A program made the translations under genes and the position numbers. Source: Ophelia neglecta (taxonomy: Eukaryota). From it: 64,000 bases of DNA. Positions 9,701 through 64,000 of this stretch are shown here, one piece after another; position 1 is the stretch's first letter, and each line of letters begins with the position of its first letter. The notes below the pieces were generated by a model that saw only the letters and a program-made list of their open reading frames with translations, ran no database searches and had not been told where the DNA came from. The stretch lies in contig OZ260662.1 in NCBI GenBank assembly GCA_965285935.1, positions 18,848,001 through 18,912,000 on the forward strand. Reading direction: 5' to 3'.

Positions 9701-12700
9701 CTCTGCTTTGTCAATTCAGCTAGTAATTGTTTAATACCTGTTAATAATTAGATGTGTTCGCCTATGGGAGGAAGCGTCCAAATTTGACAGAGAAGTTATC
9801 GAGCTGTAATCCGTAATAATAAACCGCACTGACAAACATGGTTGAATGGTTCAACTGGTAATAACGTGTGACACGACGTCACAAACAGGAAATTAACCTT
9901 TCAAGTGTTCTTCCAAAAGAGGCTCGGCTGTTGATTGCTTTTCTCGGGTTCCACAATAGGGTCTCGTGCACTTGGCCAAGTGGAATCTAGATTGTGTTTC
10001 ATAAACTCAATACTGGCTGCACACTTGAATCTCGTATCGTTGATTATATTACATGTATATGCAATTTTGCGTCAGGGATTGTATGAAAAAATGCAGCAAA
10101 TTGTCACAGGTCAGCCTTTGCTGGCCAGTGAAGATTAAAACTGATGTTATGAATTCAAATTCTTCAAACACATGTCCGTAATGGAAATAACAAATGACAT
10201 GAAGGCAAGGTTTTTTTTATCTCGGACACAAACCATTACCAAGAAAATATTCTTTTGGTATTTAATTTATTTACCGTTAATGATTCATTCGGTAAATAAT
10301 TATCTAATAGTTAATAGTCTTGTTAGTCCATAATTGACCGGTGCATAATATGTGTCGTTCCCCGGTCGTTAAGTCCCCCGGACTCACACGGAGCCCTAGT
10401 GTGATAAGACCCCAAGGACGTAAAATACTATCACGTTGGGACCGACGGACGTAATAAAACAAGCGTTCAGGGCCGGGTCGCAAATATTCCAGACTATTTC
10501 GACCTGTGAGCTCAACATACTAGAGCGGGGGACACGCAGGGTTAAGCATAAGGAATATGAACACGAATATTTTTATTGCCACTTGTACACTGCATAGATA
10601 GGTAAATTTACATATATTCAAATTAGGTTATTTTAACGTGTTCATATAGTATGATATACGCGTATGGTTCCTTTTTGGTGAAGTTGTTATATTCAGCAAT
10701 ATATAAGTAAATGAAATAACATATGTACAATTTGAAAGTGAAAAATTATAGGTGCATAGTTCTAATATTACAGCATTTAGAGGGATAACATATATAAATA
10801 ATGTGTAATTAGCTTATGAGATGATAGTATTTATACATGAGTTGAACGTATGTAAATATATCCGGTGACACTTAGCCTTCATAAATATGACGAATAGATT
10901 AAATGCTTGAAGTAAAGGCACATGTTAACGAACAACGTGATATATACATGCACATATGTATGAGTATTTACATAACAGTGTCGGGTTCATTTTACAAGGT
11001 TGCAATAAAAAAGTCGTTCACCCACTGTGCATTCATGTCTCTTTGGCGGCAGAGTTCTATATAAGCATTCTTCCTTATTGTGTCACACTCTCGGATGTAT
11101 CAAGCTAGTCTGTTTAGCGTTCTGCGCCATCTCGACGTTAGCAGTCTTACCACCGTCTGCTTTGTTGGGACCAGCCTGTAACAATTGTCGATTAATATTT
11201 TTCGCTGATTAGTGAATCTGTCACATTGTAGCAAAAAGTGGCAATCATCATCAACCATACCACAATAATTGCACAGTTTATTATTAGTAGGGCTGTTTTC
11301 CAGCTACAGGTTCCTAACCCAACGTAGCAATTTCTCAGGCGATACCTGGTTAGTTTGATGGCATTACCGTAGCCCAGATTTAACAAATGTCAGGCGGGTT
11401 CTCCCACGTCAGACTTCTCTACACGGTCTCGGTATAATTTGCCCTTGCTACTTTCGATACACATGCTAAAGGATATCATGAACGTATGCTCCCTGGAGAC
11501 GTCTTTATATCCAACCATGAAGGACTGTTTGCTTGTTATCTGATTGGTCCGCCATTCCATACTGAATCCATGTCGAAACATTGTCTCTAACACCGGTGCC
11601 CCACCTGTGATCTCTAGACGACCTTCGCAACTCAAACAACAGCTTGCTAGTTAGTTTATGTCTGTGTGTGGATCGATCAGGGAGGCCCAGTATCCCACCA
11701 CCCTGCTGTCTATTAGATCACTTACTGGGGAGATGCATTATTCCATTAATAGTGGTTGTTTTCTTTAGATGAAGATGATGCTTTACAAAAGCCAATTGAA
11801 ACCGGTCCAGTTGTGGGCTGCGTCCATAAGCCCATATTTCCGCCCGTATTCCAGGATTGGTGTTACCATAATGTTAAGGTAGTTGTAAGTAGTCCGGGTG
11901 GACCTTTCGCTCTGGCGATTCGAAACCGTTTACTCCGTTTCTAATAAAATTGAGTTCATGAAGACGTGGAAAGTCATGTCTTATTGGACGTACCCAAGTT
12001 GGGAGGTGGGGGTGGGGGGGGGGGGGTTGAGGGGAGGTAGAAGAATCTGACGTTTATCTGCTATATAAATCTAAAGAATTTCCTATCCTCAGAAGAAAAC
12101 GTGTGTGTTTAGGATGTTTTATTTTGGAACAATAAATTTGCATTTAGGATAAAATCATAAAGAACAAATCTTCTGGCCTCCGCCCACCTAACCCCCACCC
12201 CCAAACTTACTATCTAAAGACGTGTTCATAGAGTAGAAACAAACAGGCATATCTCAACAATGCAGGAACTATTTCATTTTTGATTTTATAAGCGATTATC
12301 ATACACGATGATAAATTATTATGAAAAGGATCAGTCCATCAGAGCTTGAACACTTTAATCTATAAATTGCTATCTTACATTTGATATTATTGTATTTTTA
12401 AATTAAAGGGATGGGTAACACAATAAGCCCAGTCCTATTTGACCAAGCCTAAATGAAATATACGAATATCATATTCGTGAACACATCAAGTCTAGATAGA
12501 CTGTTGCAAATAACAGTTACAACGTCCTTCTGAAATATTTGTCCACCAAGTAGGTTCATGACAATTTCACAAATGAGGGATATATCGACATTGTGTGACA
12601 CATTGTTCTTCCTTGTGGCGTTGTTACAGAGCATCGTGACTGGTATTCATTGTAAAGAGTGGTCTGTTTTGATCCTCAGTGTACATCTTTTTGGTGTCAG

Positions 12701-15700
12701 AATGAGGGTCAAAACACGGGGTTATAGGGAAAATAAGTGTCAGAACACTATGTTGGAGTGAGAACGGGCTTCGTAATAATAGATTGCGTATGGGGGTCTT
12801 ACTAAGCGCTTAGAGTGGGAATCGCCTTGTGATTAGTCGACAGTATTTTCTTCTCTTATCACATGATAGATAATATATTACTTTTTCTTTTACTGGAACG
12901 GTGCCTTGAATTTGAATTTTGGCATGGTCTGCTGTTTACTGACCAGCTTAATCACATACTTATTATTGGTATCCCCTTTGATGTTACCAGTTCCACTGGC
13001 CCTTTATTATCGGAGTTCCTTCTAGCCAAGCTTCTACTTTACACACCGTCTAGACCTAATCTAACTTATGTAACAGTGGCCGTTTTGATTTCCATTTGTA
13101 CCATTGTAAAGTCAGGGCTGTGGATTTTCCCCTCCACTGCAACGCTACAGGCCACCCTACAGACTATGTTTTAAATTAAGTTAAAAGTTAGCCAAAACAG
13201 CAGTGATCATATGGGTGTAAACCTGTGATATTGCACGCCAATAATCACAAATATTGTGCCATAATATTAGTCATATGTTAGCTATTCCAGAGGCTGTGTG
13301 TCGACTACAATTTGTTTGTGTATGGATCTTACTTGATATGGTGCTAAAAAGAAGATAATGACTATACATGTATACATTAAAAGTGTGCTTATTGTTTCAA
13401 TCGCTGGTATTCATGAGAATGAAGACTCGCCTTCTTTCATGAATGTACTAGGAAAGTTTGATATACTGTTTGCGTTCATACTGGTTAGCATCATTAAGTT
13501 GGTGCATGTATATAGCACTTCTAATTGAAGCGCCCATTGAATTAAGCCACTGCCTCGGTCATCTTCTTGAGCAAAACAACAATTAAGTTAATTGCGCTCT
13601 TGTTGTTGACAATGTATTACAATGTAAAGTCGGTTACTTTTATATGTGAGTTAATACATCTATTAAAGGCCATTTTGTTTTGGCATTTTTGACCACCTCG
13701 TATTACATCCAATTTTTTTTTGTACACTGAGTAGACATGATGGTCACAGCACAATTTGAATTTAAAAGCGTACTTTACATTCCGATCAGGGAGTGGGTGG
13801 ATGTGTTTCCAAATAAGGTCGTGTGGGGAGTGAGTGGATACTTTTCAGAATATAGTGGTAATTGGTCCAAGGACCTGCCCCTGGGAAGACTAGCGTCACC
13901 ATACTAACGACCCCTTGTAAACATTCTGGGACCTTATCTACTTGATCGTTCATGCCAGGAATCGATATCATCTATGGTGGCTTCAACCCTCGTAGGACTG
14001 CTCTTGCTGTTTTCTAACAGCAAACCTTTACCGCTTGCTCTGCAAAATGTGAACTGAACTCCATACATTTCACATTAAGGGCGGCAGGACCCATTAAGGA
14101 TGCCACTGACATCCCTTATCTTCCTCTGCCGATTTCCCATGACCAAGGCAATGAGTCTTATTGGATTCATTCATTCAATAACCATTATTGTCCTCCTTCT
14201 CTCGGATAATCGCTTTTCGTGTCATAACTAAAACCCACGCAGGCCTAGTTCCACTGCTTTGCCATAAAAAAAGCAATATCATTCAAGGGAGAATCCATTC
14301 CTCACAGCTCTTTAATTACACTGGCTTATGGTATTAGAGACATGGTCTGCACAGAGACAGGAAGCGGCTGAGCGCACATGTCCTCTTTTATGTAAGGCGT
14401 AATAATGCATCCGTAAAAAAACTTCAAAATGCCGTCTGCAATAAACAAGTTTGCTTTTTCCTGAACATGGTAAATGCAGTTTTCAATCCAATTGCGGTTA
14501 TATATACATCGTTCATGTATACTTGTTCTGCCTATTAAGATTAAATAATTAAACTATATATTTGGCCAATATTTAATTACGAACTGTCTAAGAACTCCTT
14601 CCTTCATATTCGTTAGCAGCCAATCACTGGAGGAGCTCTGTTGCCATTGTCAATACGAATAGTAGGAAGACAAATGCGTCTCTTGAGGGATGTGTTGGCC
14701 GACAGCAGTGCCGCAAAGCAGGTTTTTTGGGATTCTTTTGCGATAAATAATGCAAAGAGACAGCGCTTAAATAGTGCGCTGGAAATGATTAATGATTGTT
14801 TGCGATACGGCCTAGGGAGGCTTTGGAGACGTTTTCTCATTAGACTTCTCCCATTAATAGATATTTTATAAAAACGTAACGCGGGTCTGTGTCTGAGCCT
14901 AACCGGAAAGTACGTTAGTCCGCTACGCGTGCCAAAAGACTGCTACGCTCGTGGGGGATTAAGTGTGTTCGTGTGGCTGTGTGTTTGCTAAGGATGGGGA
15001 GGGGGGTGGGGGGGGGGTTGAGAGATTCGAGTGCGTGCGCAATGTCAGTTCTTTTGACAATGATTACGTTACGCGAGATGCAAGCGTGACGTTCCCGGAT
15101 GTACCCTGAGCCTTCGGGGAATTTTTCTCAAGGTGGCTTCGCACAGCTCACGTAGCTACGTGAAGTGCTATATTTTTAGCTCATTTAAGGTACCACAGCT
15201 AATACAGTGCGAACTCCCGGCAGTAATTCTACAAGTTACCATAAACAAACATCAGTTGCTGAAAACTTGTAACGCAAATGTTCAGTTTACCCTGAAAATA
15301 TATGTCTTCGACTCTGAGCTATGACACTTTACTCCTTGGCAGCCCAGTCATCGTTTTAAATCACTTCTGTTCTTTTCTCTCACATCAGGTGTCGGTAAAA
15401 CGGCACCGACAACTTCCTGAGGTCCCAGGTTCTACACAAGGTCAGCCATTGCATTCATTTCTTCCCAAATCTGCCATCCCATGTGACAACGCGTGGACAC
15501 AACTAATTTCCGGCGCGTCAAAATCAGCGTTCATATGTAATGACAATTTATTTCGCAGCACGTCGCGAGAGTGTAGATCGGTGCTTCCCCAGGGGGGGGG
15601 GGGGGGGGGGGTTCTACACTCATCCCGCTCTTTGGACAAGGGAACCAGTTCCAACCAAACACTTTGTTTTAGCCGACCACCGCAAGTCGAATGTTTCAAG

Positions 15701-18700: not shown

Positions 18701-21700
18701 ACACCAGAATTACATTGGAGCCGATTCGGAGAAGGAACCATTTTTTCTGTCGGTTGTATTAACAGATGCCAATAACCACAACGTACCACAGTATCGGGCG
18801 ATATTGTGTCGAAAAACGGTGAGATTTAATACCTCGTGAATGAAGAACATCATTGGCCTCTGACTCAATAATCTGTGTTCCTTATTTTCACTCAGGTTGT
18901 GCTAAACCTAAAACAGATGCGATGCCATAAACGAAATGCACCTTTTTGCACCAACACATGAAAAGCCTCTTTATTGCTTAACTAATGAGATAACCTTTTT
19001 CTTGATGTTCGGATATGAAATCGGCCCTTTAACCTCGTATATGCCAGTATATTTCTCATATAACCTCGAGCATGCGGAGCGAGTTTTGACAGGTGTTTAG
19101 AAATAAAAAATTGCAATATAAGGCTTGAAGATTTGATGTCACCACTGATGGCGTTATCATCAAGTTAATTATTAGAATTATCAATTGTTTTTGATACCAA
19201 ATGACAATATGTGTTCTGTTCCTGTTGGCTGTTTTCTTTCATAAATCATTGGAATGCCACCGACTACCCCCCCCCCCCCCTCCCCAACCCCAGCTTCCAC
19301 CAATCTATTTCGATTTCTGATCAATGGCTCTTGTTCTTCAATGGATTATAGTTTTTATTTCCTTTCCAAATGATCATCAAATTGCATTTTTTAAATTTTT
19401 TAAATTTCACCTTTTGTCTTGCAGGGTAACCAAAAGATATATCTACCCTACAGCCCTAGTAAACCCATGACAGTTAAAGGCATATTAAGGTACTGATTAT
19501 ATCGTTTGATTTTGTACTGATAAATTATGCAAAACTAATTCTATTTCAAGTATTTAGTATGTCATTGCCCTATTGAATTGCTTAACGCGAAAAATATTAT
19601 TGTCAGGAAGTTCACATGCCAGGCAGTAGAAATCTGTGCTGGTTGGACACCACGAAAAGCAAAACGCTGTTCCGAGTGGACCTAGACGCCAAAGGGCGAT
19701 ACAACTCTCTGCTTAGTGGAAAGTAGACTTTAGAGGGCAATTCGTCTCTCTACTGAGAGAACAGTGGAACCAGAGGGCGTTACAACTCTCCGCCGAATGG
19801 ACATTAGAAACCAGAGGGCGTTATAACTCTCTGTGAGGATAGTAGACGCTAGAGGGCATTAAATATCACTTCTGAACGGATGATAGACGCCAGAGGGCGT
19901 TAAAACTCCCTGTCGACTGTACAGTGAATGCCAGAGAGCGTAGGAGCTCTCTGCTAAAGGGACAGTCGAAACTAGAGGGCGTTACAATGTCTTTGCTATG
20001 TGGACAGTAGACGCCAGAGGGCGTTACAGCTAACTGCTAAGTGGACAGTAGACGCCAGAGGACGTTACAGCTATCTGCTAAGTGGACAGTAGACGCAAGA
20101 GGGCGTTACAGCTATCTGCTAAGTGGACAGTAGACGCCAGAGGGGGTTACGGCTATCTGCTAAGTGGAGGTAAACGACAGAGGGCTATACAATCCTCTGC
20201 CGGGTGGACAGTAGACCCCAGAGATCGTTACAATGCTCTGCAGATTTGAGAGTAGACGTATATGACGTAGCATCAGAGCTCTGCGGAGCTGCTAGTAAAC
20301 GCCAGAGGTCGTTGTAACTAACTGCTGAATGGAAAATAGAAAACAGAGGGCGTAAACACTCTACTGAAAAGCCAGAGGACGCAACAACCCCTTCGGGGGG
20401 GAGCGTTACATCTCTTAGCAGCTTAGTGCATAGTACATGCAAGAAAACGTTACAGCTCTCCGCTGGGTGGACAGATGACGCCGCATTACAGCTCTCTGCT
20501 GGGAGGGCAGTAGACGCCACAGGACATTACAGCTCTCTGCTGGGTTGACAGTAGACGCCACAGGAAGTTACAAATATTTGCTGGGTTGGCAGAGGACGCC
20601 ACAGGACATTACAGCTCTCTGCTGGGAGGGCAGTAGACCCCACAGGACATTACAGCTCTCTGCAGGGAAGGCAGTAGACGCCACAGGAATTTACAACTCT
20701 GCTGGGTTGGCAGAGGATGCCACAGGACATTACAGCTCTCTGCTGGGAGGGCAGTAGACGCCACAGGATATTAACGCTCTCTGCTCGGTTGACATTAGGC
20801 GCCAGGGGCCATTACAGCTTTTTGCTGTGTGAAAACCAAATATAAGCTACAGTGATTTGTTCACAATTATCAATCCCTCTAATAATAAAAGAAAAATAAT
20901 TAGTATCCACTATTAACGAGTTAAATTAGTGATAGCCGCACGCATGTGCATGTGACGTATCATTTATTTACTTATTACATATATGCAAACTTAATCTTAC
21001 TGGAGCCATGCTGTTTAAAGTAATGTATATCATCTCTGCAGTCATTTTGACGTAAATAAAGTGGAGAAAGGACCAAAAGAGATATTCAACCCTGAAATCC
21101 AGAAAGAATTGCTTGTATTAGAAGAGCAAGAGGTAAGTTACCCATTGGAAAATATATAGAGATAAAATATGTTAAGCTAAACAATAAACACGTATAGCCA
21201 ATTCATCAGTGTGTGGCAAAATAAATGTAAAGCTATTTATCAATATACAATGTATTTGACTTTGATCATTATTGCCTGCTTATCATAGAGTAGTTTGATG
21301 AAAAATGTACATGCACTTCGGTGGGAAAAAGCCTCTTTATGTACAGATAATCTTACTTTTTATAGGGATCCGTGAATTTTAAGTTTGGTGTACTCTTTGC
21401 TAAAGAAGGCCAGGTCTCGGATGATGAAATGTATAGTAACGGTAGGGGCGGTTACTGAAACTTTTTATGCTGATTAGAAAAACCAATCATGTTAGTATAA
21501 ACCAGGACATCATGGCACGCGGGAAAACATGGCCATAATTGTGCGATAATCGAGAATTATAGAGAAAACTTGTGCACGATTTTTTTCGCTCACCATATAT
21601 TAATAAAACTGGTAGTTTTCTATCATGCGTGTTTGATCACAAAAATGTTATTGGTTCAGGGCATTGATTTTGACATCATTATAAGGATATTAGTGGAATT

Positions 21701-49600: not shown

Positions 49601-51499
49601 TACATAACATATAAACAATTGTAGGTTATAATTCCATTCTAATAATAAATTCCCAGTGGAACCTGGATTGTTTTAGTTTCGTCCAAAGATATTTTTGACA
49701 TAATAACAATTACAAATTGTATAATTATAGTCTTTTGAATATACGCTTGTCTTGACTTATAAGGTGTTAATGAGTTAAGGTACTCATACATACCACATCG
49801 TTTATGTTAAATAATCGTTTAGTTAGCGTCTACCATTGCTATTGTTACCTTATAAGTGAGGGTTGCATAACAAATTATTTACATTTTCTATTGAAGCCGA
49901 TTGAGGTTCGTGCCCAGTAATTAGTGTAGCTACACATTTTTAAACATGTTACCAACCGTTGAGATATTATGTACCTTAACACCTCTGCCACTCTGTTTCC
50001 GGATGCCAGGGCGTTGCGGACAGGTTGTCGTGTAAGCGTGCGTCCGGCGAAGACTAACAAGGGACACGCCTTGGTATCGTTCGTGTTTTTTAATACTAAA
50101 ATAACCACACTCGATCATAGTGTTTCCTGTTTAAGTCGTCCCTGCGACACTCACTTCGCTCTATTCTAAACTAAGTCAGCAATGGACCTACCATTAACCT
50201 TTTGGTTTCCCAGAAATGCACAGAGTATGTCATAAAGAACATCCGCATATATATTTCGTCTTATCCGTATCGCTTTTTTTGTACACCGAAAGGAGGCCTA
50301 GACACTAAACAGTTTCAAATGTTATTTGTGTTCTAACATTTTTGCTGTAATAATGGCCCCTGTAGCATGTAGATTATAAGCATTTTTTTATTTTTAAACT
50401 TTTGGATAAATATTTATTAAAATTGAGGCAAAAGCTCCAGGTTACAACGGACTTTTTCAAATTCGCGATAAAATGTTCACAACTATATCCAAATGTAACA
50501 CCCCTATTGAGGACTTGCGGACTGAAATTAAAGATTCAATCAGGCCTGAAGTGAGTAACGTTAAATCTACTAACGACGACTCTCCATTATGACTGCTCGT
50601 GTGTTGGTTTGAGCAGCCATTGTTTTAAAACCTAGGAACTAAAAGACTGCAATGGCTTTGAGTGATCATTCCAACTCATACTGATAGAAAAGTGTATGTT
50701 GCCGCTGCACCAGATTCAGTTACAATAAAAGCGGCACTGGTTCGCCTAATAGTTTACATCTTACTTACCATCGAGGAGAATCAGTACCCGTTTCTTCTTT
50801 GATATGCGTGGACCTTTCCATGCTTCTCAGGTCTTGTGTTTATCTGAGTACCGGTATCTGGCGCCCGGTTGGCCAAAGCACTCCCCGTGTACGGAATGGT
50901 CAGATAATGAGCGGGTATAGCGCTAGGTGGAAGCACCCGTTTTTTGAGACAATTTTATCACTAGTCTTAACAAGTTTGTGAGAGCGTAGACCAGTATAGA
51001 CTCTCCAAGGGCACTTTTCACCTCTGTCCTACGTTAACCACTCAGTCGTTTGTTTTGTGTTCTGCCCGCATCGTGGAAAATTTGGGTCTACTGCACATAG
51101 CAAGCGATATCAATTGTTTGCTTTCATTAACTATTTTTTTTCATTACAAGTTTATTTTACTAATTGGGAACCGGAGATTAATGTTTTGTTGTGTGTGGGC
51201 CTATCGCTGCTGGTTCCCTGATGATTTCGGACCTATTTTATGAACTATTGTCGACAGATTGCTTTCCTTCTTTTGTCTGCCGGGTATCCACTTCCGTTTT
51301 TAAGGGCTGAGTAGGCGTGCACGAAGTGATGATCGAATAGCATCAGTGAGTGTATCTACTGGTTAACCAGTTAACATTCGAGAGATCATTTTCCCAGCCA
51401 GAATGATTCCAAATGTTGACTGGCAGTGTTTATGCTATTGCATCGGTCGGGGCGTACTAGTTATAGGTAAATCGTGGCTCGTTTCTCATTAAAGGTATA

Positions 51500-51861
51500 T
51501 GTAACTGCAGTAATATCACCGCTAGTTTGTATATGGTGCAACACTTATGCCACCTGGTGAGTGTGGTGGCCGTCTTCCGCCAGTCACCGGTCACGTGGTC
51601 ACATCTGCCATTTTTCGCAGTCTCACTCCGTCACCGTGACATGCGGATGGCTGCGCTGACCAGTCCACAGGCCAAAGAGGTAACTGTTCTTATTGTTCAT
51701 TTGTACTCGTTATTTGTGTCTTATGTTAATCTATGTTAATACGTGACAGATGTGTAAATTCTATGTATTCTTTCAGTTTTACGGAGCTACGAACACCAAT
51801 AAAACTCCTGTTAAAACCTCACGCCTGTTCATGCGTCTTCTGTAAGCTCGGCGCAGCTATA
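51500..51861 (+). repeat. 5' LTR (362 bp)
   Basis: TGTAACTGC...GCAGCTATA; AATAAA at 51798; 8 substitutions versus the 3' LTR by manual comparison. Confidence 0.96.
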
Positions 51862-52878
51862 GTAAAACTCTTCGTCTCGGATCCATTGGTTTGGCTTCCC
51901 TATGCCTAACTCTGGTAATGCCCAACACCATAGACCGTGGGCAGCCAACCATGTATGCAGTCTGCAGTGGCCAGTTAGCCTTCTCTGTGCCAACGTATTT
52001 CGACTCTGTGTCAATGTATTCGGACACTTTCTCCTGCTCATGTGAACCTTCAACACAAACGTGCTAAATCCTGGCACCCTTCCTTCAACGTTCGGGAATA
52101 TCGCCCATCCAGAATCGTCCGGTTGTTCGTCAGGTCTAAACAAGATAGTACTTTGATGGAACTTTTGAACACCGTCCAAGCCATTCACTTCGACAAGCCT
52201 ACACATATTCTGGTAACGCCTGGCATTTATTCTCAACAGTATTGAGCACTTGGTTCCAATGTGACCATTCTGTGGTCTGCCGATGTGACACTTGTGTAGC
52301 GCCATATCTCCGGGTTATCCGCCATCTTGAAAACATTATTGCCTGCCATAATTATTGAAGAATTTGTAATAAAGTGAGAGTTATTATTTGTTTAACATTG
52401 AAATTAGATTATTGAACATTTATTGCAATTTTCTCAGGTTACCAATGAATTATGATTTCAGGATTGAGAAATGCCATTAATTATCGAATATTACTGAATG
52501 CCTACACACCTTGATACTATAGATATTGATTGAATTGATTGTACTTTATTGTAATTGCATGTTTATGGAATGCGTGTAGGTAATTCTTCACATGTCTTCA
52601 CATGTCATTTCGAATTTACGTGCATTTTCTCACATATAAGCCGAAAGGTAAGTCAGTCTTAGACGTTGGCTGCACCAAATTGCTGTACTCTGTGGGAATG
52701 GCTCGAGGTTTGTTCGTGACAGGCTATTGTTGTATAACTTGTATCACTGTTTGCTCATTACTATTCATGGCATCGTTTGTCCTACATGTAAGTGCTAGTT
52801 TCACAACTACATGTGGCGATTAAACTATGTCTTGTCATCTCTTCATTGTCTAACCCACATAGTTTCATCTACATAATT

Positions 52879-55185
52879 ATGGATGTAAATAAAATAAGCA
52901 AGGAAGAACTCCTTGAGATTCATGGGTTTGGCGAAATACGCCCTACAAAGTTCATAGAGTACAGAGATTCTCTAGGCCGTCCTTTAGATAATACTGATAT
53001 ACCCCTCATTGAAGGCATCCCAGAGGCTGTTGTCAGAACAGCTCTAACCCAGGGTATTCTCTATTTGCCTGGGAGCCGGCCCGCTAGTAAAACCCCATCC
53101 AAGACATCATCTCATCCCATCACCATCTCTCGGAAACATTCGCCTCGCCATACAAAGGGATCAGCTTCTCAGAAGAAGTCTGTCTAATCCCATTCGTCCT
53201 CTGGTGGTGGTAAGAGTATACATTCACTTGCTTCAGCTAAAATAGAAGCCGCACTTGAAGCTGCTTCTGACAAATCGAAGTTGAAATATTTTCAGGCTGA
53301 GTCAGAACAAAGGTTAGCTATTGAAAAACAAAAGTTGGCATTAGAACAACTGGAAGCCGTAAGATTGTTAGATACTGCACAAGCTCAACTAGATGTTGTG
53401 GCCCAGCTAGAGAAGGAGGAGAACGGAGATTTCTTTGAGTCAGATTTGCCGGGTGAGGCAGATGATAATTTCGCACTCACTAGATTTTTGCAACAGCCAG
53501 AGATTTCTGAACCAGCTACTGCGCCCGTCGTTCACGAACCAACGTTAGGTTCAAGGGCAGCTAATATGTCCGACACTCTGCCAACACCTGGAGCAGAGAA
53601 TGTTTCTGGCGCCTTGCAGATCCCTGTCTCTCTCTCTCGGGGTAATAGCCCTGCTCTTTCTACTTCGCCCTATGTGACATCTCCCTCTATGAAGTTGATT
53701 ACTTCGGCAACATCATTAGTTGCTCAGCAGCCTGCAGCGACAACCGTTGTATATCCAGCGGTGACATCAATCCCGGTCTCCTTGATATCGACCGAGTCTA
53801 TGCCTTTGTCGAATAAATTCGCCCAAGTGGACTTGCAAGGTTTTGACCCCCTCTACCCTTTAGTTGAGGGAAACTCGCCTGTTGTTTCTCCTGTGCCTAG
53901 GCAGCCCTCGGTGCTTGCACATCCGTCTTTGCAGCCTCGGTTGAATGCAAACCCATATCTCTCGTCTGTGCAGCCTTCGATGGCCACACATCCGTCTCCT
54001 TCGTCTGTTCAAGGACCAGCTTATGTAATGGCTCCCTCGGGAGAAATTTCTATGCCGAACACTGCAGTGGAAAGCACTCTTTCTGTAACTGCCCCGCCGT
54101 GGCATCCGTCTCCTATCCTTCGACATTCTGTTACTCATGTTGGCCAATCTGAATCAGAACATTTAGGATGCTTCAAGCCAACCAGGGCTCCTGTCATGTC
54201 TGCTAGACACAGGAATCGTATGCTCAAGTTGACCATGACAATTCGCTACTATGTTTGATATCAGAACAGCTTGCACTGGGAAGATTGGCTCCCCCTGAAC
54301 CTGGTATTTTTGGTGGAAATCCACTTCAGTATCCAGCTTGGAGGGCAGCCTTTGCTACTTTGGTGGAACAAAGACATGTTTCGCCAAAGGAACGAGTTCA
54401 CTACCTGAGGCGATATCTGTCCGGTACAGCCAAAGAAACAGTAGATGGTTGTTTTATTCTTCCATCGGATGATGCCTTCGAGGAGGCCATGTCTCTGCTA
54501 GAAAAGAGATTCGGTGATTCATTTGTTTTAGCCAGAGCCTTCCGGGACAAGTTATGTACTTGGCCAAAAATTCAACCTCGAGACGGTTTAGGTCTCAGAA
54601 GATTTGCAGATTTCGTCCGCCAGTGCAATGTGGCAATGAAATCTCTTGGTCCCTTGTCAATTCTTAATGACGAAAGGGAGAACCAAAGGTTGTTACAAAG
54701 GTTGCCAGATTGGTAAATTGTTCGCTGGAACCGTGTTGCATCTGTTAGTAGAAGGGACAAGGGCGTTTTTCCCCCGTTTCACGAGTTCGTTGAATTTCTG
54801 GTAGCCGAGGCAGATATTGCCTGTGATTCGGTAACGTCCCTTCAGGCGCTGAAGGACACTTCTGTACCCACTGGTTCTTCGTCGGCACCCACTCCTGCCA
54901 TCAGGACTGTGGTGAACAGGGGTGGTGCTTCTAAAACAGTTTTTGCCTCCACTGCTCAGAACAAAGCTACTACATCTTCAGCTCCTAGGTGTGCTTTCTG
55001 TAAAAAGGCACCCTCTAGATTCTTGTATAGGTTTGTCATCTAGACCTTTGGAAGACCGAAAACAATACATCAAGGAAAATGGACTTTGTTTTGCTTGTTT
55101 GAACCCAAACCACACCTCTAAGTTTTGTAAAGACAGAGCGACATGTAAGACATGTTCTAAGAGGCATCCAACAATACTACATTGA
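52879..55185 (+). pseudogene. gag: BEL/Pao gag region, disrupted: N-terminal HhH domain, coiled coil, Pro/Ser-rich linker, capsid-like (DUF1759-type) domain, three zinc knuckles
   Basis: ATG 52879; in-frame stops at 53185, 54714 and 55183; frameshifts near 54200-54255 and 55005; motifs PEPGIFGGNPLQYPAWRAAF, CAFCKxHPLDSC, CFACLNPNHTSKFC, CKTCSKRHPTILH. Confidence 0.88.
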
Positions 55186-58100
55186 GATGTTCCGGTAGGA
55201 GGGAATCCAAGCAGGTTTTCAGAGCCAAGGTCCGGTCTTGAAACGCCCAGTACTGTTTCTCCGCCTACGGCTGGTGCTTCACGTATCTATACGCCATCTG
55301 TCTCGCACGATATTACTCTTGATACTTCTGGTGTGGCTTCCAAGAGTACTATGATCTTGCCTGTCTGGTTGTCACACGTCTTTAACCCAGGCAGGGAAGT
55401 CCTGGTCTATGTTCTTCTCGACTCACAGTCTGACTCAACGTTCGTGCTGGACTCAAAGTGCGACGATCTAGGCATTGCTGGTCCGTCGGTTAATCTTTCA
55501 CTCTCTACTATGTCCAGTTCTGGTCACGAGATCACAAGCAGCCGTATCACGGGTCTACTGGTAAGAGGCCACGATAGCGACCATAGAATCAATTTGCCTC
55601 TTGCTTACACCAGAAACATGATGCCTGCTGACAGGTCTCATATTCCGTCTCCAGCTATGGCCAAACAGTGGCCGCATTTAGAATGTATTTCAGACCTTTT
55701 AATGCCAGTTGATGGGGAATGTAAGGTCGCTCTTCTTATCGGATATAACTGTTTGCGAGCCCTTGACCCAAGAGAGGTTATACCCCCAACCAGCAACGAA
55801 CCCTTTGCGCAGCGGACCGATCTAGGGTGGGGGATCGTAGGGATCGTTGAACAACACAATTTTGAGACTGATGAAATAGGCGTTAGTCATCATATATTTT
55901 CTACTGAGCTACCGTCAGTTGCAATTTCTTTAAGAACTGGAGTAAAAGAGGTCACTACAGAGAGGGTTATTAACCTTCTAGAATCTGACTTCAGTGAAAG
56001 GGCAGTAGGACCCTCCTTGTCATTCGATGACAAGAAATTTCTAAACTTGATGCATGAAAACATTTGTAAACTACAGTCTGGTCACTATGAGATGCCACTG
56101 CCGTTCAGAGACGGTGACCCAAGTTTACCATGTAACCGTAATGTCGCTCTCCGTCGCCTGCAAAGGCTGAAGCTTAGTGAGGACTATGTCTGTTTCATCC
56201 AGGATATGATTTCCAGGGGATACCCCGAAAGGGCGCCCAGTGAAACAATTCCTGGACATGTGTGGTATTTGCCCCATCACGCAGTTTGCAATCTAAATAA
56301 ACCAAAACTTAGGGTTGTTTTTGATTGCAGTGCCAAGCACAATGGTGAATCTTTAAACGATCACCTCTTGTCTGGACCGGATTTGACAAATACATTACTT
56401 GGTGTCTTGTGCAGGTTTCGAAGGCAACCGGTAGCATTCATCTGCGACATTGAAAAAATGTTTTATCAATTTTTTGTTACACCCAGACATCGGGACTACT
56501 TACGCTTTCTGTGGCGTGAAGAGGGGAAGGTTGTCGAGTACCGTATGACGGTCCATCTTTTTGGGGCTAGGTCTTCTCCTGCCTGTTCTAACTTTGGCTT
56601 GAAGCAATTGGCAGGGGACGGAGAGTATGAGTTTGGGTTGGAAGCAGCCGAATTCATTCGGAATAATTTCTATGTTGACGATGGGCTGGCATCTCTTTCA
56701 ACGGCTGAGGAAGTCATCAAGTTGTGGAACAGCGCTAAGGGCCTTTGTGCCAGAGGTGGCGTGCGACTGCACAAGGTCGTGTCGAATTCAAAGACTGTTA
56801 TTAATGCTGTTGCTCCAGAGGATAGAGCCAAGGATCTTGCCAATTTTAACATGTTTTCAGATGATCCTTTGCCTATAGAGCGAGCACTTGGTCTGTACTG
56901 GTGCATTGAATCCGATTGCTTCAGATTTAGAATTTCGCTACACGACAAACCTCTTTCACGGAGAGGCATTTTAGCTACAGTCGGGTCCATATATGACCCA
57001 TTAGGGCTACTTGCACCAGTTGTTCTTGTTGGCAAAAGGATACTCCAGCGTCTTTGCCGAGACGGTGTTGGTTGGGATGATCCAATCGCGGACGGGATTC
57101 GAGCCGAATGGACCCAATGGCGGGAAAGCCTGTTTGAATTGAGTGAATCGCATGTTCGGAGGACTTTCAGGCCCCATGAATTTTCTGTTCTGGCAGTCGA
57201 GATACACCATTTCTCCGATGCTAGTTTCACCGGCTATGGCCAGTGCTCGTATCTCCGACTTGTTGGCCCAGATTCTCGAGTTCATTGTACTTTGGTTATG
57301 GGCAAGGCTCGAGTGGCTCCTCTCAGACAAATCACCATTCCTCGCTTGGAACTCATGGCCGCTGTAGTATCTGCAAGGGTCAGTTCAGTCCTTCAACGAG
57401 AGCTGTGCTATGAAAATGTGAGGCACTTTTTCTGGACAGACAGTCAGATTGTTTTGAGCTACATAACGAATGACATTCGTAGGTTTCACGTGTTTGTGTC
57501 AAATAGAATACAGCAGATCAGAGATAATTCCGATCCTTCTCAGTGGAGATTTGTAAGGTCCAAGGACAATCCGGCTGACGAGGCTTCAAGGGGACTGTCT
57601 GTCCCTGATTTCCTACGCCATTCTAATTGGGTCCCTGGGCCCACCTTTCTTTGGAATGCGGGCAATGTGACTGCACAATATAATTCTGAATACCCATTGT
57701 TCCCCGATGATCCCGAGATTAAAACATCAGTTAATGTATCATGCGCAGCAAGTTCCGTACAACCCACAAGAATGGTCCCCTCTTATCTACTGGGTTATTT
57801 CAGTGATTGGATACGTGCAAGGCGAGCCCTTGCGCTCTGCTTGAAGTACAGACAGAAACTCCAAGGTTTACAAGTTGACATATCTGTGACTGTTCAGGAT
57901 CTGGCCACTGCTGAGCGAGAAATCGTCAAGCTTGCTCAGGCAGAGTGTTTTTCTGAAGAGATTTCTGTTCTCCTCGCTATTGAAGGGGATTTGGCCATTC
58001 CTGGTAGAAAACAGACAAAACAGCGGAAGGTTGCCCTGAGAGGTACAAGTGCCTTGTACAGACTAAACCCATTCATAGACGAGTTTGGTGTGCTACAAGT

Positions 58101-59288
58101 CGGTGGTTGGATCAGACAAGCTGATCTTTTGGAGAGGGAAAGGTTCCCTGCTGTGTTACCTCGCAATCATTTTATCTCAAGGTTGATAATTGATTATTGT
58201 CATAAACTTACCCAGCACCAGGGTTGAGGCATGACTGTAAGCGCCATCAGACGGAAGGGCTTCTGGATCGTCGGCTGTAGCTCTGCCGTTGCCTTTCATA
58301 TTCATCGTTGTGTTTTTTGTCGACGATTCAGGGGGCCTCTTCTTACACAGAAAATGGCCGACCTCCCTTTTGATCGTGTTTCCCATGTGCCACCCTTCAC
58401 ACATTGTGGTGTGGACTACTTTGGTCCTTGGCTTGTCAAGGAAGGCCGCAAGACACTGAAAAGATACGGTGTGTTGTTTACATGTTTGTCCTGCCGAGCC
58501 GTGCACATTGAAACTAGTTGTTCTCTTGACACGTCGTCGTTCCTGAATGCCTTGAGGCGTTTCATGTCTATCCGTGGGCCAGTCCGTATACTGAGGTCCG
58601 ATCAAGGCACCAATTTTGTAGGTGCTCAGAATGAATTGAAAGCAGCATTACAGGAGATGGACCAAGACGAAGTCAAGAAATTCTTGCTACGTCGCGATTG
58701 CGATATAGAATTTCTTATGAATCCCCCGAGTGCAAGTCATTTTGGTGGCGTTTGGGAACGGCAAATCCGCTCCATCCGAAACGTTTTGTCTTCTATCTTG
58801 TTTCAGTCTGGTTGTCAGCTGGATGACGAAGCCTAACGCACATTCATGGCAGAGGCTGCAGCCATTGTAAATAGTCGTCCTCTGACAACCGACAATCTAA
58901 ATGATCCGACTTCTCTCTCACCTCTGACCCCAAACATGATTTTGACAATGAAATCTGGTGTCATCGTTTCTCCTCCCGGTGCATTTGAGCAAGCCGACTT
59001 GTACGCCAGAAAACGGTGGCGCCGGGTCCAACGTATTCTGGTCCCGTTGGAAGGCTGAGTATCTTAACACTCTCCAGTCTCGGCAGAAATGGGTACAGGT
59101 TAAACGTAACCTTCGCAATGGTGACGTCGTGCTATTGAAAGAGGAGACTCCTCGTAATCAGTGGCAACTGGCCAGAGTTGTACAGACATATCCTGGTGAC
59201 GACGGTCACGTGCGTAAGGTTAAAATCGTACTTGGAGATTCATCTCTTGACCAGTCAGCAAACTAGTATTACTTGTTGAGTGCGACTA
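55186..59288 (+). pseudogene. pol: BEL/Pao pol region, disrupted: aspartic protease, reverse transcriptase, RNase H, integrase, C-terminal DUF5641-like domain
   Basis: 964-codon open stretch 55333-58227; in-frame stops at 58225 (HQG*GMT) and 58834 (DDEA*RTF); frameshift/deletion near 59030 (RWRRVQ//FWSRW) and near 59255 before KLVLL. Confidence 0.95.
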
Positions 59289-59456
59289 AGTTAAGTCGTC
59301 TCATCCGTTATTCAATCTAATTTATGTCTACTAACATGTATGATCATCCTTAATGTCTGTCACGAACACGTTCTGTTTCAGGTTGCTAGCTTATGAACAT
59401 GGTATACGTGCGGGTCTCATTACTCGATTTATTGTATTTATGTTGCTACAAGTAGC

Positions 59457-59465
59457 AAAGGGAGG
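59457..59465 (+). promoter_or_regulatory. polypurine tract (plus-strand primer)
   Basis: AAAGGGAGG 2 nt upstream of the 3' LTR. Confidence 0.75.
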
Positions 59466-59467
59466 TA

Positions 59468-59829
59468 CGTAACTGCAGTAATATCACCGCTAGTTTGTAT
59501 ATGGTGCAACACTTATGCCACCTGGTGAGTGTGGTGGCCGTCTTCCGCCAGTCACAGGTCACGTGGTCACATCTGCCATTTTTGGAAGTCTCACTCCGTC
59601 ACCGTGACATGCGGATAGCTGCGCTGACCAGTCCACAGGCCAAAGAGGTAACTGTTCTTATTGTTCATTTGTACTCGTTATTTGTGTCTTATGTTAATCT
59701 ATGTTAATACGTGACAGACGTGTAAATTCTATGGATTCTTTCAGTTTTACGGAGCTTCGAACACCAATAAAACTCCTGTTAAAACCTCACGCCTGTTCAT
59801 GCGTCTTCTGTAAGCTCGGCGCAGCTATA
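59468..59829 (+). repeat. 3' LTR (362 bp)
   Basis: CGTAACTGC...GCAGCTATA, preceded by a purine tract. Confidence 0.96.
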
Positions 59830-59984
59830 GTATATGATAAAATTATTATAGCCTTGGTAAAAAAGATAGGGAGAGTAAACTAAATATTGTATAATCCTTG
59901 GATTTTGGGGCTACTGGGAATGGACAAACGAGTTCAGGGCCGCTTTTTTTTGTACCAGTCAACCCTAGAGTCTTGTACAAGCCC

Positions 59985-61021
59985 TGTTTAGTCCATTCAT
60001 GACTGTCAGAGCTCCGTTTAGTCCGTGTTTGACTGCCAGAGCTCAGATTAGTTCGTGTTTGACTGTCAGAGCTCCGTTTAGTCCGTGTTTGACTGTCAGA
60101 GCTCCGTTTAGTCCGTGTTTGACGGTCAGAGCTCCGTTTAGTCCGTGTTTGACTGTCAGAGCTCCGTTTAGTCCGTGTTTGACTGTCAGAACTTCGTTTA
60201 GTCCGTGCTTGACGGTCAAAGCTACGTTTATTCGTGTTTGACTGTCAGAGCTCCATTTAGTCCGTGTCTGATTGTCAGAGCTGTCAGAGCTCCGTTTAGT
60301 CTGTTTTTGACTGTCAGAGCTCCATTTAGTCCGTGTTTGACTGTCAGAACTCCGTTTAGTCCGTGTCTGATTGTCAGAGATCCGTTTAGTCCGTGTTTGA
60401 CTGTCAGAGCTACGTTTAGTCCGTGTTTGACTGTCAGAGCTCCGTTTAGCCCGTGTTTGACTGTCAGGGCTCCGTTTAGTCCGTGTTTGACTGTCAGGGC
60501 TCCGTTTAGTCCGTGTTTGACTGTCAGAGCTACGTCCGTGTTTGACTGTCAGAGCTCCGTTTAGTCCGTGTTTGACTGTCAGGGCTCCGTTTAGTCCGTG
60601 TTTGACTGTCAGAGCTCAGTTTAGTCCGTGTTTGACTGTCAGGGCTACGTTTAGTCCGTGTTTGACTGTCAGGGCTACGTTAAGTCCGTGTTTAATTGTC
60701 AGAGATCCGTTTATTCCGTGGTTTCCTGTCAGAGCTCCGTTTAGTCCGTGTTTGACTGTCAGGGATCCGTTTAGTCCGTGTTTGACTGTCAGAGCTCCGT
60801 TTAGTCCGTGTTTGACTGTCAGAGATCCGTTAAGTCCGTGTTTAATTGTCAGAGATCCGTTAAGTCCGTGTTTGACTGTCAGAGTTCCGTTTAGTCCGTG
60901 TTTGACGGTCAGAGCTCCGTTTAGTCCGTGTTTGACTGTCAGAGCTCCGTTAAGTCCGTGTTAAATTGTCAGAGATCCGTTTAGTCCGTGTTAAATTGTC
61001 AGAGATCCGTTAAGTCCGTGT
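59985..61021. repeat. 30-bp tandem array (~34 units)
   Basis: Unit TTTGACTGTCAGAGCTCCGTTTAGTCCGTG with few variants and small indels. Confidence 0.97.
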
Positions 61022-64000
61022 ATCAATTTTTAACGATAAACAAGCTAAGCGCTAATGAGGGACATTATTAAGGTGTATTGTTCTGCGTGTTTGACGGTTG
61101 TGTCTGCTCATTTTGCGCAAAATTTTCCGAACTTCCGACGAAACAGAACATTCAATGACTTCTTCCAAAGCTATTGGTGAATGGCAAGTAAAAAAAACAG
61201 TACATCGACAGAAGCGGTGTGTATTGCTCTTTTCAACGAAACACAACGTTTTAGGTCTTAAACCATCATATGTTCTTATCATGAGGGTGAGTTAAAACCG
61301 ATTGTTTGAGGGCGACCGGTGTTAAATACGGTCACTTATTTCTAGCTGAGTTACCTTAATTGCTTCTTCTAGTGATGTATTCATTTGATATCTCGCCAGA
61401 AGTTAACCGTTTGAAATGCCATTTTAAAGTTGAATTGATAGTTAATGTCATGTATATCCTATCTTGCCGGAGAACATATTCTTATATCGTCATAAGGTTT
61501 CATAATAGAAAGCAATTTGTCTTTGAATTTGTTTTCCCCTGGGCATAGCAATAATTCTCAGATTTAGCAGGAAAGGAAATTTCGAGGTTATGAAAGTCTC
61601 AAAATCTCGTTATGAAGACAGATCAGGTGTCGAAAAGTAAAGATTTATTGCTCGTTGTGTGACACTTTTACCATTTGTGCCACGAGAATGAATAGGACGA
61701 ATGGCATATTTGTGTAGTTATTTTGATATAGTGATGACGTGCACTTCCCTTGTTTGCAACTCGGGAAGGATGCGCAAATAAACATTGAGTCCCTTGAGTC
61801 TGGTGAATAATTGGTAACAAAGTAGCTGCACCTTCCACAAACGGCGCGGACACATCTGGGCTTGCCGTCTAAGAGCTTCTTTATTCAAGGAACACGGTGT
61901 TGCACACATGATACGCATTAATACTTTAGAATAAGGGGAATCCATTTCCGAAAGGAATTTTCAACTGCGTTTCTACAGATCAAAAGCAATGTCTTCAATA
62001 GCTATAATAACCCGTATGCTTTCTCTCTTTATCGGTCTCTTATATATCAAACAACAATTTGTTTGTCAATGTATTCAGAGGCGTTTCTTGAAATGCAAAC
62101 TTGTGCATCAAATATGACATTGTATTGATAATTTTCTATCATTGGTGTTGATTGTCTCAACTAGACAGTAATTTGTTTTCTGTTTTACATCCTATGCCAA
62201 TTACATTATCTCACCCTGTAACCTAATTTTAAAGGTGCCACACGTGCGGTCTCAGTTCCTGTGGTAATACCCCCCCCCCATCCCCTCGAGCTTAGAGACC
62301 ACATGTAAATGTATGTCCATTCTATGATAGATGGCACCAGCTCTGGGATATATAGACTCGGGGACGGTTTCCTTTTCCGGCTCGCAGGCAGGCCTATAGG
62401 CGACTGTGGCCTTCTTGCTGATTTATTGTCTCTTGCCGGGTTTCATCCATCCACGTCTCCAGCCATGATGGCCTTTGTTAAAAGTCCGACATTTTTACCG
62501 AAAGCTGATCCTCTAAAGATTTCAGTTAGTTAACACTGACGTGAACTAAAAAATAAATGCCTAAAGTTCCTATCTTGCTTCAAGAAAATAACATTGAATG
62601 ATATATATTTTTGGTTGGAGTAAATCAGTTTGCCGAATTAACAAGTTCTTGCGCATTAATTGCAGTAAAGATAGGATAGTGTATAGATACACTATACACC
62701 CAATTTAGCATAAGATAGACACATATATTAGGGCCTAAACTGATGAGCTGACTAAAAGTGCATATTAGTAGGATAATAGGCCGTCTATTCCAAAAGGGTA
62801 CTATGGCTGATTAGTTAAGCATATTTTTTAATATTCAAATACAAGCAAAGGACTTCCGGCTCAAATCGTTTCCATTATTAGTATAAAATTGATTACTTAT
62901 ACAAATACTTAGCGCCGCAATCAAGATGAAACATCATGAAGGTAATAAGTGTTCAAAGAAACTTTCAAAGATGCTTGCAACCTTAAGAAAGGAAGCGGTA
63001 ACCCATTAGGATATCACGTGAAGAAATAAGTGAAGGCAAAAGTAATCATTGCTCCGGTAGGACTTGTCATATAGAATTTTGCGCTGTTGGATAATTTTTT
63101 TTTAACCTTGTTGATTTAATGACCGCAAATATTGTTTTTGTTTCCGGTATAAACATTTTCTTTGTTACTCATTTCGAATCGTATGTTGTTACTAGTGCCA
63201 CGAAGACATCTATACAATTTATTCAGGTAAAAACAAAGAAAAACGTATTTTCTTTATTCTGTTTAACGCAGATATTTTGTATGACGCATTATAAAGAAGG
63301 CAACATTACGCCAAAGGCAACATTTTCAATGGAGGCTGAGTTTACAATTGAAACTAAAATATATATTTTTTTGGTCGAAATGTTTTCGCCTAGCTGCCAA
63401 GTTACTATACAACTCTGCCAAACAATTCTGTTTTTCAGTCTCCAATCATTGCCTTTTGTCTTTACTTGTTACATTTGTCTAACAATGCAAGTAGGAACTT
63501 GGAAAGTCCATGTATATTTACGTACATTCTCTTTACTAATTACCTGCGGATGTAACTGCCACTGGTTAAGGTTACTATTTTGGTTTTGTCGACCCAGGAA
63601 GTAAGAAACACTAAGTACGTAAGCTTTGGTGCGTGGGTTCGAGTGACAAGCAATTAAGAGAAACTTAGTCAGCCGACTGCCTGCTTACTCTCGTTTTGCG
63701 CTGTTGGATATTTGGTTTTTAATGTATACTGCATACAAACAACTTGATGAATGCATTTTGGCAACAGCAGAGTGTAGAGTGATATCCATCACGACCCTAC
63801 CTTCGCCTACCTCCCCCAGCCCCCTCCGCCAATCCTTAACCCAAATCCACATCCCTCAGAGAATTAAACCGTCAATTCTGAATAAGGGAAACTATATTAT
63901 TTTATTTTGGGCTGTTTCTGATTCACACGTTCGTCAAAAGATATAAACAAAAAATTCTTCTATTCTTTTGGTGCTAATAATAACCATAGTGATGACGTAA

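Follow-up and report, generated by a model that had tools for sequence, protein, structure and literature searches.

We identified a BEL/Pao retrotransposon that lacks a tRNA-type primer site and in which removal of a small putative intron inside the long terminal repeat (LTR) would join two RNA segments into an exact complement of the 11 nt directly following the 5′ LTR. The same arrangement is kept in about 30 related families from corals to fish, pointing to an undescribed way of starting reverse transcription in which the element primes on its own RNA. The comparison of sequences supports this reading, but splicing, the transcription start and priming itself are inferred.

Structure of the element

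The window, a 64,000 nt stretch of the Ophelia neglecta assembly GCA_965285935.1 (contig OZ260662.1, positions 18,848,001 to 18,912,000, forward strand), contains direct repeats that are the LTRs of a single element on the + strand. The two LTRs are about 2% diverged, start with TGTAAC and end with GCTATA, and their edges are fixed by comparison of the 5′ and 3′ copies, by the 5 bp target duplication, and by solo or 3′ LTR copies elsewhere in the genome whose flanks diverge right after GCTATA. About 40 genomic copies share the same edges, and one solo LTR (L028) shows its own 5 bp duplication, GGTGG. The interior carries DUF1759 (PF03564, 5e-13), Peptidase_A17 (PF05380, 6e-44), rve (PF00665, weak) and DUF5641 (PF18701, 6e-25) in that order, which makes the element BEL/Pao with the order PR-RT-RH-IN. 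These domains lie in at least six separate open frames with at least five frame breaks between the pieces, so this copy is degenerate. The coordinates of the features are collected in Table 1.

Table 1. Features of the BEL/Pao element and its putative split primer (positions within the window)
Position	Strand	Feature	Basis
51495-51499	.	Target-site duplication GTATA, left copy (right copy 59830-59834)	The same 5 nt flank both LTRs
51500-51861	+	5′ LTR, 362 nt	Alignment with the 3′ LTR; shared edges in genomic copies
51670-51674	+	G/C-rich motif followed by A (GGCCA), just 5′ of the paired exon-1 tail; role unknown	Similar motif at a fixed distance in most related families
51675-51679	+	Last 5 nt of putative exon 1 (AAGAG); pair with 51868-51872	Only LTR position that extends the match by more than 3 nt; sits on a GT donor
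51680-51776	+	Putative spliceosomal intron, 97 nt, GAG/GTAACT to TTCTTTCAG; GC 29% against 53% for the flanks	Position, GT-AG ends, pyrimidine tract and low GC kept in about 30 related families
51777-51782	+	First 6 nt of putative exon 2 (TTTTAC); pair with 51862-51867; proposed primer 3′ end is C at 51782	Covaries with the post-LTR sequence across families
51798-51803	+	Polyadenylation signal AATAAA, 15 nt after the proposed primer end	Signal between acceptor and LTR end in 22 of 29 families
51862-51872	+	Primer-binding position GTAAAACTCTT, directly abutting the LTR; complement of the spliced junction	Conserved in all 5′ LTR-internal junction copies; 11th base T or A
52792-59266	+	Broken gag-pol region with DUF1759 (Gag), Peptidase_A17 (within a 964-aa PR-RT-RH frame), rve and DUF5641	Separate open frames
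59456-59467	+	Polypurine tract region CAAAGGGAGGTA, just before the 3′ LTR	Same 12 nt precede the LTR in the other internal-LTR junction copies
59468-59829	+	3′ LTR, with the same intron-like segment at 59648-59744	Donor, acceptor and both primer halves identical to the 5′ LTR

The initial annotation had described a post-LTR sequence without TGG, a GT-AG intron-like segment in the LTR, and a spliced junction that is the exact reverse complement of the 11 nt after the LTR, and this observation is confirmed. The first TGG occurs 27 nt after the LTR, and the unspliced LTR offers only an 8 nt match (AGTTTTAC, 51775-51782). The joined sequence AAGAGTTTTAC occurs in the window only as the reverse complement of the primer-binding position. 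A GT-AG junction match of 11 nt or more anchored at that position was reached by 0 of 1000 decoy targets taken from the element's interior. Most of the coordinates given earlier were correct, with two corrections needed. The second AGCT of a proposed AGCT/AGCT helper helix is at 51855-51858 rather than 51854-51857, and the 11th pair is polymorphic in this family, as position 51872 is T in about 10 genomic copies and A in about 17 while the exon-1 end stays AAGAG, leaving most copies with a 10 nt match. A tRNA scan found no tRNA gene in the window, and an Rfam search of 51300-52900 gave no match.

Covariation in related families

Since the acceptor lies in TCAGTT, an initiator-like motif, we first expected a Tf1-like arrangement in which an unspliced transcript starts at 51775, and only related families could decide between this and a spliced primer. 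A protein search with the 964-aa pol frame found relatives at 42–53% identity in molluscs, echinoderms, cnidarians and fishes, and the DNA around nine of them was examined, with LTRs defined in each by self-comparison and by target duplications. Together with the element of the window this gave ten families with well-defined LTR pairs, from the window, two ENA contigs, Mytilus, Patiria, Patella, Porites, Nothobranchius, Oryzias and Lytechinus. Other BEL/Pao families of the O. neglecta genome were not included in the comparison; the 30 pol loci retrieved from it (L031-L060) do not reach their LTRs.

In all ten families the LTR holds a stretch, preceded by a pyrimidine tract and YAG, that is complementary to the first 5–7 nt after the LTR and varies in step with them. 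TTTTAC is matched by post-LTR GTAAAA, TTTTCAC by GTGAAAA, TTCTTAC by GTAAGAA, TTCTCAC by GTGAGAA, TTTGAC by GTCAAA, and TTGAC by GTCAA. We then scanned every LTR position for the one that best continues the complement, and the top position falls on a GT donor. With the loci of related families labelled L061 to L069, the donors are CCAAAGAG/GTAA in the window, L062 and L063; GAAG/GT in L061 and L069; GGAG/GTAA in L064 and L065; CGAG/GTA in L067 and L068; and CGTTG/GTGAGA in L066. In every case the following post-LTR bases are the complement, namely CTCT, CTTC, CTCC, CTCG and CAACG. The joined match is an exact complement of 10–11 nt anchored at the first base after the LTR, and is reached by only 0–6 of 1000 decoy targets per family. 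L061 and L063 come from one sample and the same assembly, yet their post-LTR sequences differ (CTTC against CTCT), each in step with its own exon-1 end.

To widen the sample, metagenome contigs were scanned with a pol alignment, which returned 80 loci at 38–52% identity, many of them assemblies with the two LTRs collapsed into one. Only positions of the form [AT][CT]A/GT were examined, and a GT-AG junction complement of at least 10 nt with the acceptor 40–300 nt upstream was required. This gave 32 hits at 887 positions in the zone upstream of gag against 2 at 1548 positions inside coding sequence, a 28-fold enrichment. Of the 33 loci with enough upstream sequence, 25 carry the signature and two or three more do so at relaxed settings, though six to eight of the 33 show no signature.

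Altogether there are 32 distinct junction sequences, each matching its own post-LTR sequence over 10–14 nt when spliced (mean 11.2 nt) against 4–10 nt unspliced (mean 7.5 nt). Exon-1 tails include AGAG, GAAG, GGAG, CGAG, CGTTG, AATCG, TGATAT, AATGT, ATAAGT and AAAGTG, and exon-2 heads include TTTTAC, TTTTCAC, TTCTTAC, TTCTCAC, TTTGAC, TTGAC, GATTAC and GACAAC, with each pair mirrored by its own post-LTR sequence, so that compensatory changes occur on both exon sides. Eleven junctions have exon-1 tails that do not end in AG (TGATAT, AGATAT, CGATAT, AATCG, CGTTG, AATGT, ATAAGT, AAAGTG and others), and in these the unspliced match is only 4–7 nt. Covariation between the primer-site bases and the spliced junction, especially on the exon-1 side, had been set out in advance as the test of a self-primer completed by splicing, and it came out positive, including on the exon-1 side. 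The interpretation put forward in the initial annotation is therefore supported.

Splice-site features of the putative intron

Although donors and acceptors were chosen only for GT or AG and complementarity, they show the properties of a spliceosomal intron kept at a fixed position. The chosen donors have A, A, G and T at +3 to +6 in 62–72% of cases, against 16–35% at other GT sites in the same LTRs (p 2.5e-12), giving a GTAAGT consensus. The chosen acceptors have 70% pyrimidines at −17 to −3 against 51% at other AG sites (p 5e-13), and all 29 are YAG. Intron GC is 0.32 against 0.40 for the flanks and is below that of the flanks in 27 of 32 families, while length runs from 97 to 530 nt with no sequence conservation.

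One relative (L143) has a short LTR without the intron and carries a contiguous 13 nt complement at the same kind of LTR edge, and is either an ancestral form or a product of a spliced RNA. Intronless LTR copies were also sought in the window's own genome by searching the two exons separately, but in all of about 38 paired LTR halves the intron is kept, with the halves 97–105 nt apart and never adjacent. New copies therefore inherit the intron.

Reads joining the donor to the acceptor had also been named as expected evidence. A search of sequencing runs returned three of unrecorded type that hold the element, and these showed unique flank at about 10–30x and the element at about 150–500x, which means genomic DNA; they show the unspliced LTR, and no join skipping 51680-51776 was found. 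Spliced RNA has thus not been observed, no RNA data having been examined. A Logan contig (L070) considered as a possible transcript is an LTR-collapsed assembly that keeps the intron.

Other features of the leader

In the 22 of 29 families with a poly(A) signal between the acceptor and the LTR end, the signal lies at a median of 26 nt after the proposed primer end, which leaves a short R segment for strand transfer. The proposed primer always ends in AC and is usually followed by G. A G/C-rich triplet plus A lies 1–2 nt before the paired tail in most families, with positions −5 to −3 being G or C in 23–24 of 29 families and position −2 being A in 22 of 29. It could be a transcription start or a helix extension, although neither has been proven.

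The helper helix proposed earlier, an AGCT/AGCT pairing that would extend the fold, is not supported, as it is not conserved and pairing between the sequence 3′ of the primer and the LTR end is no better than in mismatched family pairs (p 0.89). On the other side, pairing of the sequence 5′ of the primer with that 3′ of the site is slightly better than in mismatched pairs (p about 0.008), which is weak evidence that the G/C-rich motif pairs with bases just after the site and that the helix continues beyond the 11 pairs; taken together, these two results do not tell us whether a second, U5-IR-like helix lies next to the primer duplex. Minimum-energy folds of spliced leaders were equally undecided, containing the junction-primer site duplex in only 4 of 10 families and not in the window's own.

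Proposed mechanism of priming

We consider it likely that this BEL/Pao lineage primes minus-strand DNA synthesis with its own RNA rather than with a host tRNA, and that the priming sequence exists only after a spliceosomal intron inside the R part of the LTR has been removed. In this view, transcription starts upstream of the donor, splicing joins AAGAG to UUUUAC, and the 10–11 nt junction pairs with GUAAAACUCU(U), which directly abuts the LTR. By analogy with Tf1, in which the first 11 nt of the RNA pair with the primer site and RNase H cuts between nt 11 and 12 (PMC7175516), the element's RNase H would cut after the C at 51782, and reverse transcriptase would extend that 3′ end through U5 and the rest of R. 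The roughly 40 nt between the cut and the poly(A) site would then serve for strand transfer. The sequences themselves demonstrate the complementarity, its position at the LTR edge, its maintenance by compensatory change in about 30 families across four phyla, and the splice-site features, whereas that splicing happens, where transcription starts, the cut (RNase H cleavage was not assayed), priming itself, and whether it acts in cis or in trans are our inferences.

The strong-stop DNA would copy only U5 and the part of R beyond the cut, so the intron of new LTRs would come from the 3′ LTR of the template. The model therefore needs an extra assumption, either that the 3′ LTR of the template RNA stays unspliced or that the spliced RNA primes an unspliced genomic RNA in trans. 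An intron spliced far downstream of the stop codon marks an mRNA for nonsense-mediated decay, which would remove genomes spliced in the 3′ LTR and is one possible filter, though not one examined here. In the window itself splicing adds only 2–3 pairs, and the primer would carry exon 1 as a 5′ extension unless transcription starts just before the paired tail; how plus-strand transfer copes with that is unexplained. A more speculative possibility, which we hold only tentatively, is that a whole clade of BEL/Pao retroelements found in Cnidaria, Mollusca, Echinodermata and fishes uses the host spliceosome to license reverse transcription. Only RNA that has lost the LTR intron could then act as primer, while only RNA that keeps the intron in its 3′ LTR could be the template for new copies, so replication would need two RNA forms, and the spliced one may act in trans as an element-encoded primer RNA.

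Alternative explanations

The alternative that survives best, though we think it unlikely, is that the pairing is real but is not a primer. The post-LTR sequence could bind both exon ends, in pre-mRNA with the intron looped out or in spliced RNA, to control splicing, translation, dimerisation or packaging, with reverse transcription primed by something else. Covariation shows pairing and not priming, folds do not always favour the duplex, and the possible continuation of the helix would fit. However, the complement starts exactly at the first base after the LTR in every family, a position set by the primer's 3′ end in all known LTR elements, no other candidate primer site is conserved nearby, and the intronless L143 keeps a contiguous complement at the same place.

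Tf1-style self-priming without splicing, our own first reading, is very unlikely. Here transcription would start at the A of the acceptor AG, the first 8 nt of the RNA would pair with the primer site, and the intron would simply be promoter DNA. In its favour, TCAGTT resembles an initiator motif, L061 has TATAAAA about 32 nt upstream of that A, and the unspliced match is 8–9 nt in many families. Against it, in the 11 families where exon 1 does not end in AG the unspliced match is only 4–7 nt against 10–13 nt spliced, the exon-1 side covaries, the AG is always preceded by a pyrimidine tract, and the donors carry the GTAAGT consensus.

It is similarly improbable that a host RNA is the primer, for example a tRNA fragment cut in the anticodon loop as in copia or Ty5, with the LTR similarity being secondary. 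GTGAAAAC-type sites recur in several phyla, a sequence ending in GUUUUCAC resembles a tRNA-Glu(UUC) anticodon loop (a resemblance not tested here), and BEL/Pao elements are described as tRNA-primed (PMC8742986). Host tRNA and small RNA sets were not searched, so an unusual tRNA fragment is not formally excluded, but at least 32 different site sequences each match their own LTR junction, including different sequences within one sample, and no TGG abuts the LTR. Chance complementarity in an AT-rich LTR, suggested only by the 2–3 pairs that the exon-1 side adds in the window alone, is refuted by the decoy tests, the enrichment over coding controls and the covariation.

Comparison with known systems

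The closest known systems are Tf1/Tf2 and the Tf1/sushi group of Ty3/gypsy elements, which use self-primed reverse transcription (Levin 1995, 1996; Lin and Levin 1997, as summarised in PMC7175516). As in these elements, there is no tRNA primer site, about 11 nt of the element's own RNA are complementary to the sequence abutting the 5′ LTR (here only for the spliced form, except in L143), and a cut by the element's RNase H would be needed to create the primer 3′ end. The element does not belong to the Tf1/sushi lineage, as its pol is BEL/Pao and the nearest proteins all carry PF05380. In Tf1 the primer is the contiguous first 11 nt of the transcript, whereas here the complement is split by an intron of 97–530 nt inside the LTR and would exist only after splicing; whether it forms the very 5′ end of the transcript was not measured. 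The extra helix next to the duplex that Tf1 needs has no conserved counterpart on the U5 side, and on the other side there is only the weak evidence given above.

With canonical BEL/Pao elements (Belpaoviridae, genus Semotivirus) the element shares LTRs, a 5 bp target duplication, a polypurine tract, Gag with DUF1759, and the PR-RT-RH-IN order with the Pao protease. The ICTV profile describes an 18 nt primer site complementary to the 3′ end of tRNA-Arg or tRNA-Gly and replication primed by a host tRNA (PMC8742986), but this clade has no such site, with no conserved TGG-type site in the relatives, and carries a self-complement instead. In copia and Ty5, whose primers are taken from an internal part of initiator tRNA-Met, the primer site also does not begin with TGG and is short, but those sites match a host tRNA and are the same across copies and families in a host, while here each family's site matches its own LTR junction. 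Retroviruses such as HTLV-1 have a splice donor in R, so that a spliceosomal signal lies inside the LTR; splice sites in the HTLV-1 LTR are mentioned in bioRxiv 10.1101/2023.01.28.526022. There the intron ends far downstream and yields subgenomic mRNAs, whereas here both putative splice sites lie within the LTR and the exon junction itself would be the functional sequence.

Priming of reverse transcription is a defining step of retroelement biology, and self-priming is documented only for the Tf1/sushi branch of Ty3/gypsy. The BEL/Pao survey and the Sinbad paper do not discuss primer sites, and full-text searches for self-priming, primer sites or LTR introns in BEL/Pao found nothing relevant, although most subscription journals were outside their reach and absence there is not proof. 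If our reading is right, self-priming arose in, or was kept by, a second superfamily, it is spread across at least four animal phyla, and its primer is created by splicing, which links retroelement replication to the host spliceosome in a way we found described nowhere in the literature searched. It would also explain why automated annotation reports no primer site for these elements, and it gives a simple sequence rule for finding their LTR edges and active leaders.

Repeats and related copies

An array of about 32-40 copies of a 30-nt unit begins some 50 nt after the 3′ LTR, and a second array with a 41-nt period was found elsewhere in the window. The whole genome (G000) is very rich in BEL/Pao, with 817 first-look candidates for the Pao protease, many of them inside open frames of 1600-2100 aa, although their pol is only 27-44% identical to that of this family. 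At least nine copies of an internally deleted derivative lie head to tail on C7 of this genome, about 5.5 kb apart. Each LTR is preceded by the polypurine tract of the previous unit, so this is a tandem LTR-internal-LTR array. In the relative from Porites lutea (L066) the repeated unit is 1257 nt, but the LTR proper ends at 5982; the repeat therefore includes the leader and the start of gag, suggesting a tandem or nested arrangement.

Locations of repeats, variants and motifs in the window and in related copies
Feature	Sequence	Positions
Array of 30-nt units	Window	59883-61100
Array with 41-nt period	Window	19826-20868
Head-to-tail internally deleted derivatives (loci L003-L008, L011, L013)	G000, C7	87805000-87856200
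Leader deletion variant	Window; genomic locus L010	51867-52177 (window)
First open frame after the leader	Window	52792-53187
G/C-rich triplet followed by A	Window (and the same place in 29 families)	51670-51674
AAAACTC in R	Window	51800-51806
Region of the short LTR without intron (L143)	ERZ1740069 NODE-24	7240-7545
Repeated unit (L066)	Porites lutea	5466-6722 and 12454-13710

Leader and LTR variants

A deletion variant of the leader skips 309 nt, with TTCGA in between, and is present in the DNA contigs of two of the three sequencing runs examined (X2 and X3) and in one genomic copy. The leader is 930 nt long, and the first open frame after it gives a weak helix-hairpin-helix (HHH_3) match that falls below Pfam's cut-off.

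A related element, L143, whose pol is about 39% identical, has a short LTR of about 290 nt with no intron and carries a contiguous 13-nt complement (TAAGAAATTCGAC) of its post-LTR sequence. In the window, R contains a near copy of the primer site core, AAAACTC, and in the minimum-energy fold of the spliced leader the U-rich junction pairs within R (about 51800-51817) rather than with the primer site itself. Just ahead of the paired exon-1 tail, at a distance of 1-2 nt, lies the G/C-rich triplet followed by A, and it is possible that this motif is a transcription start, or one side of a second helix.
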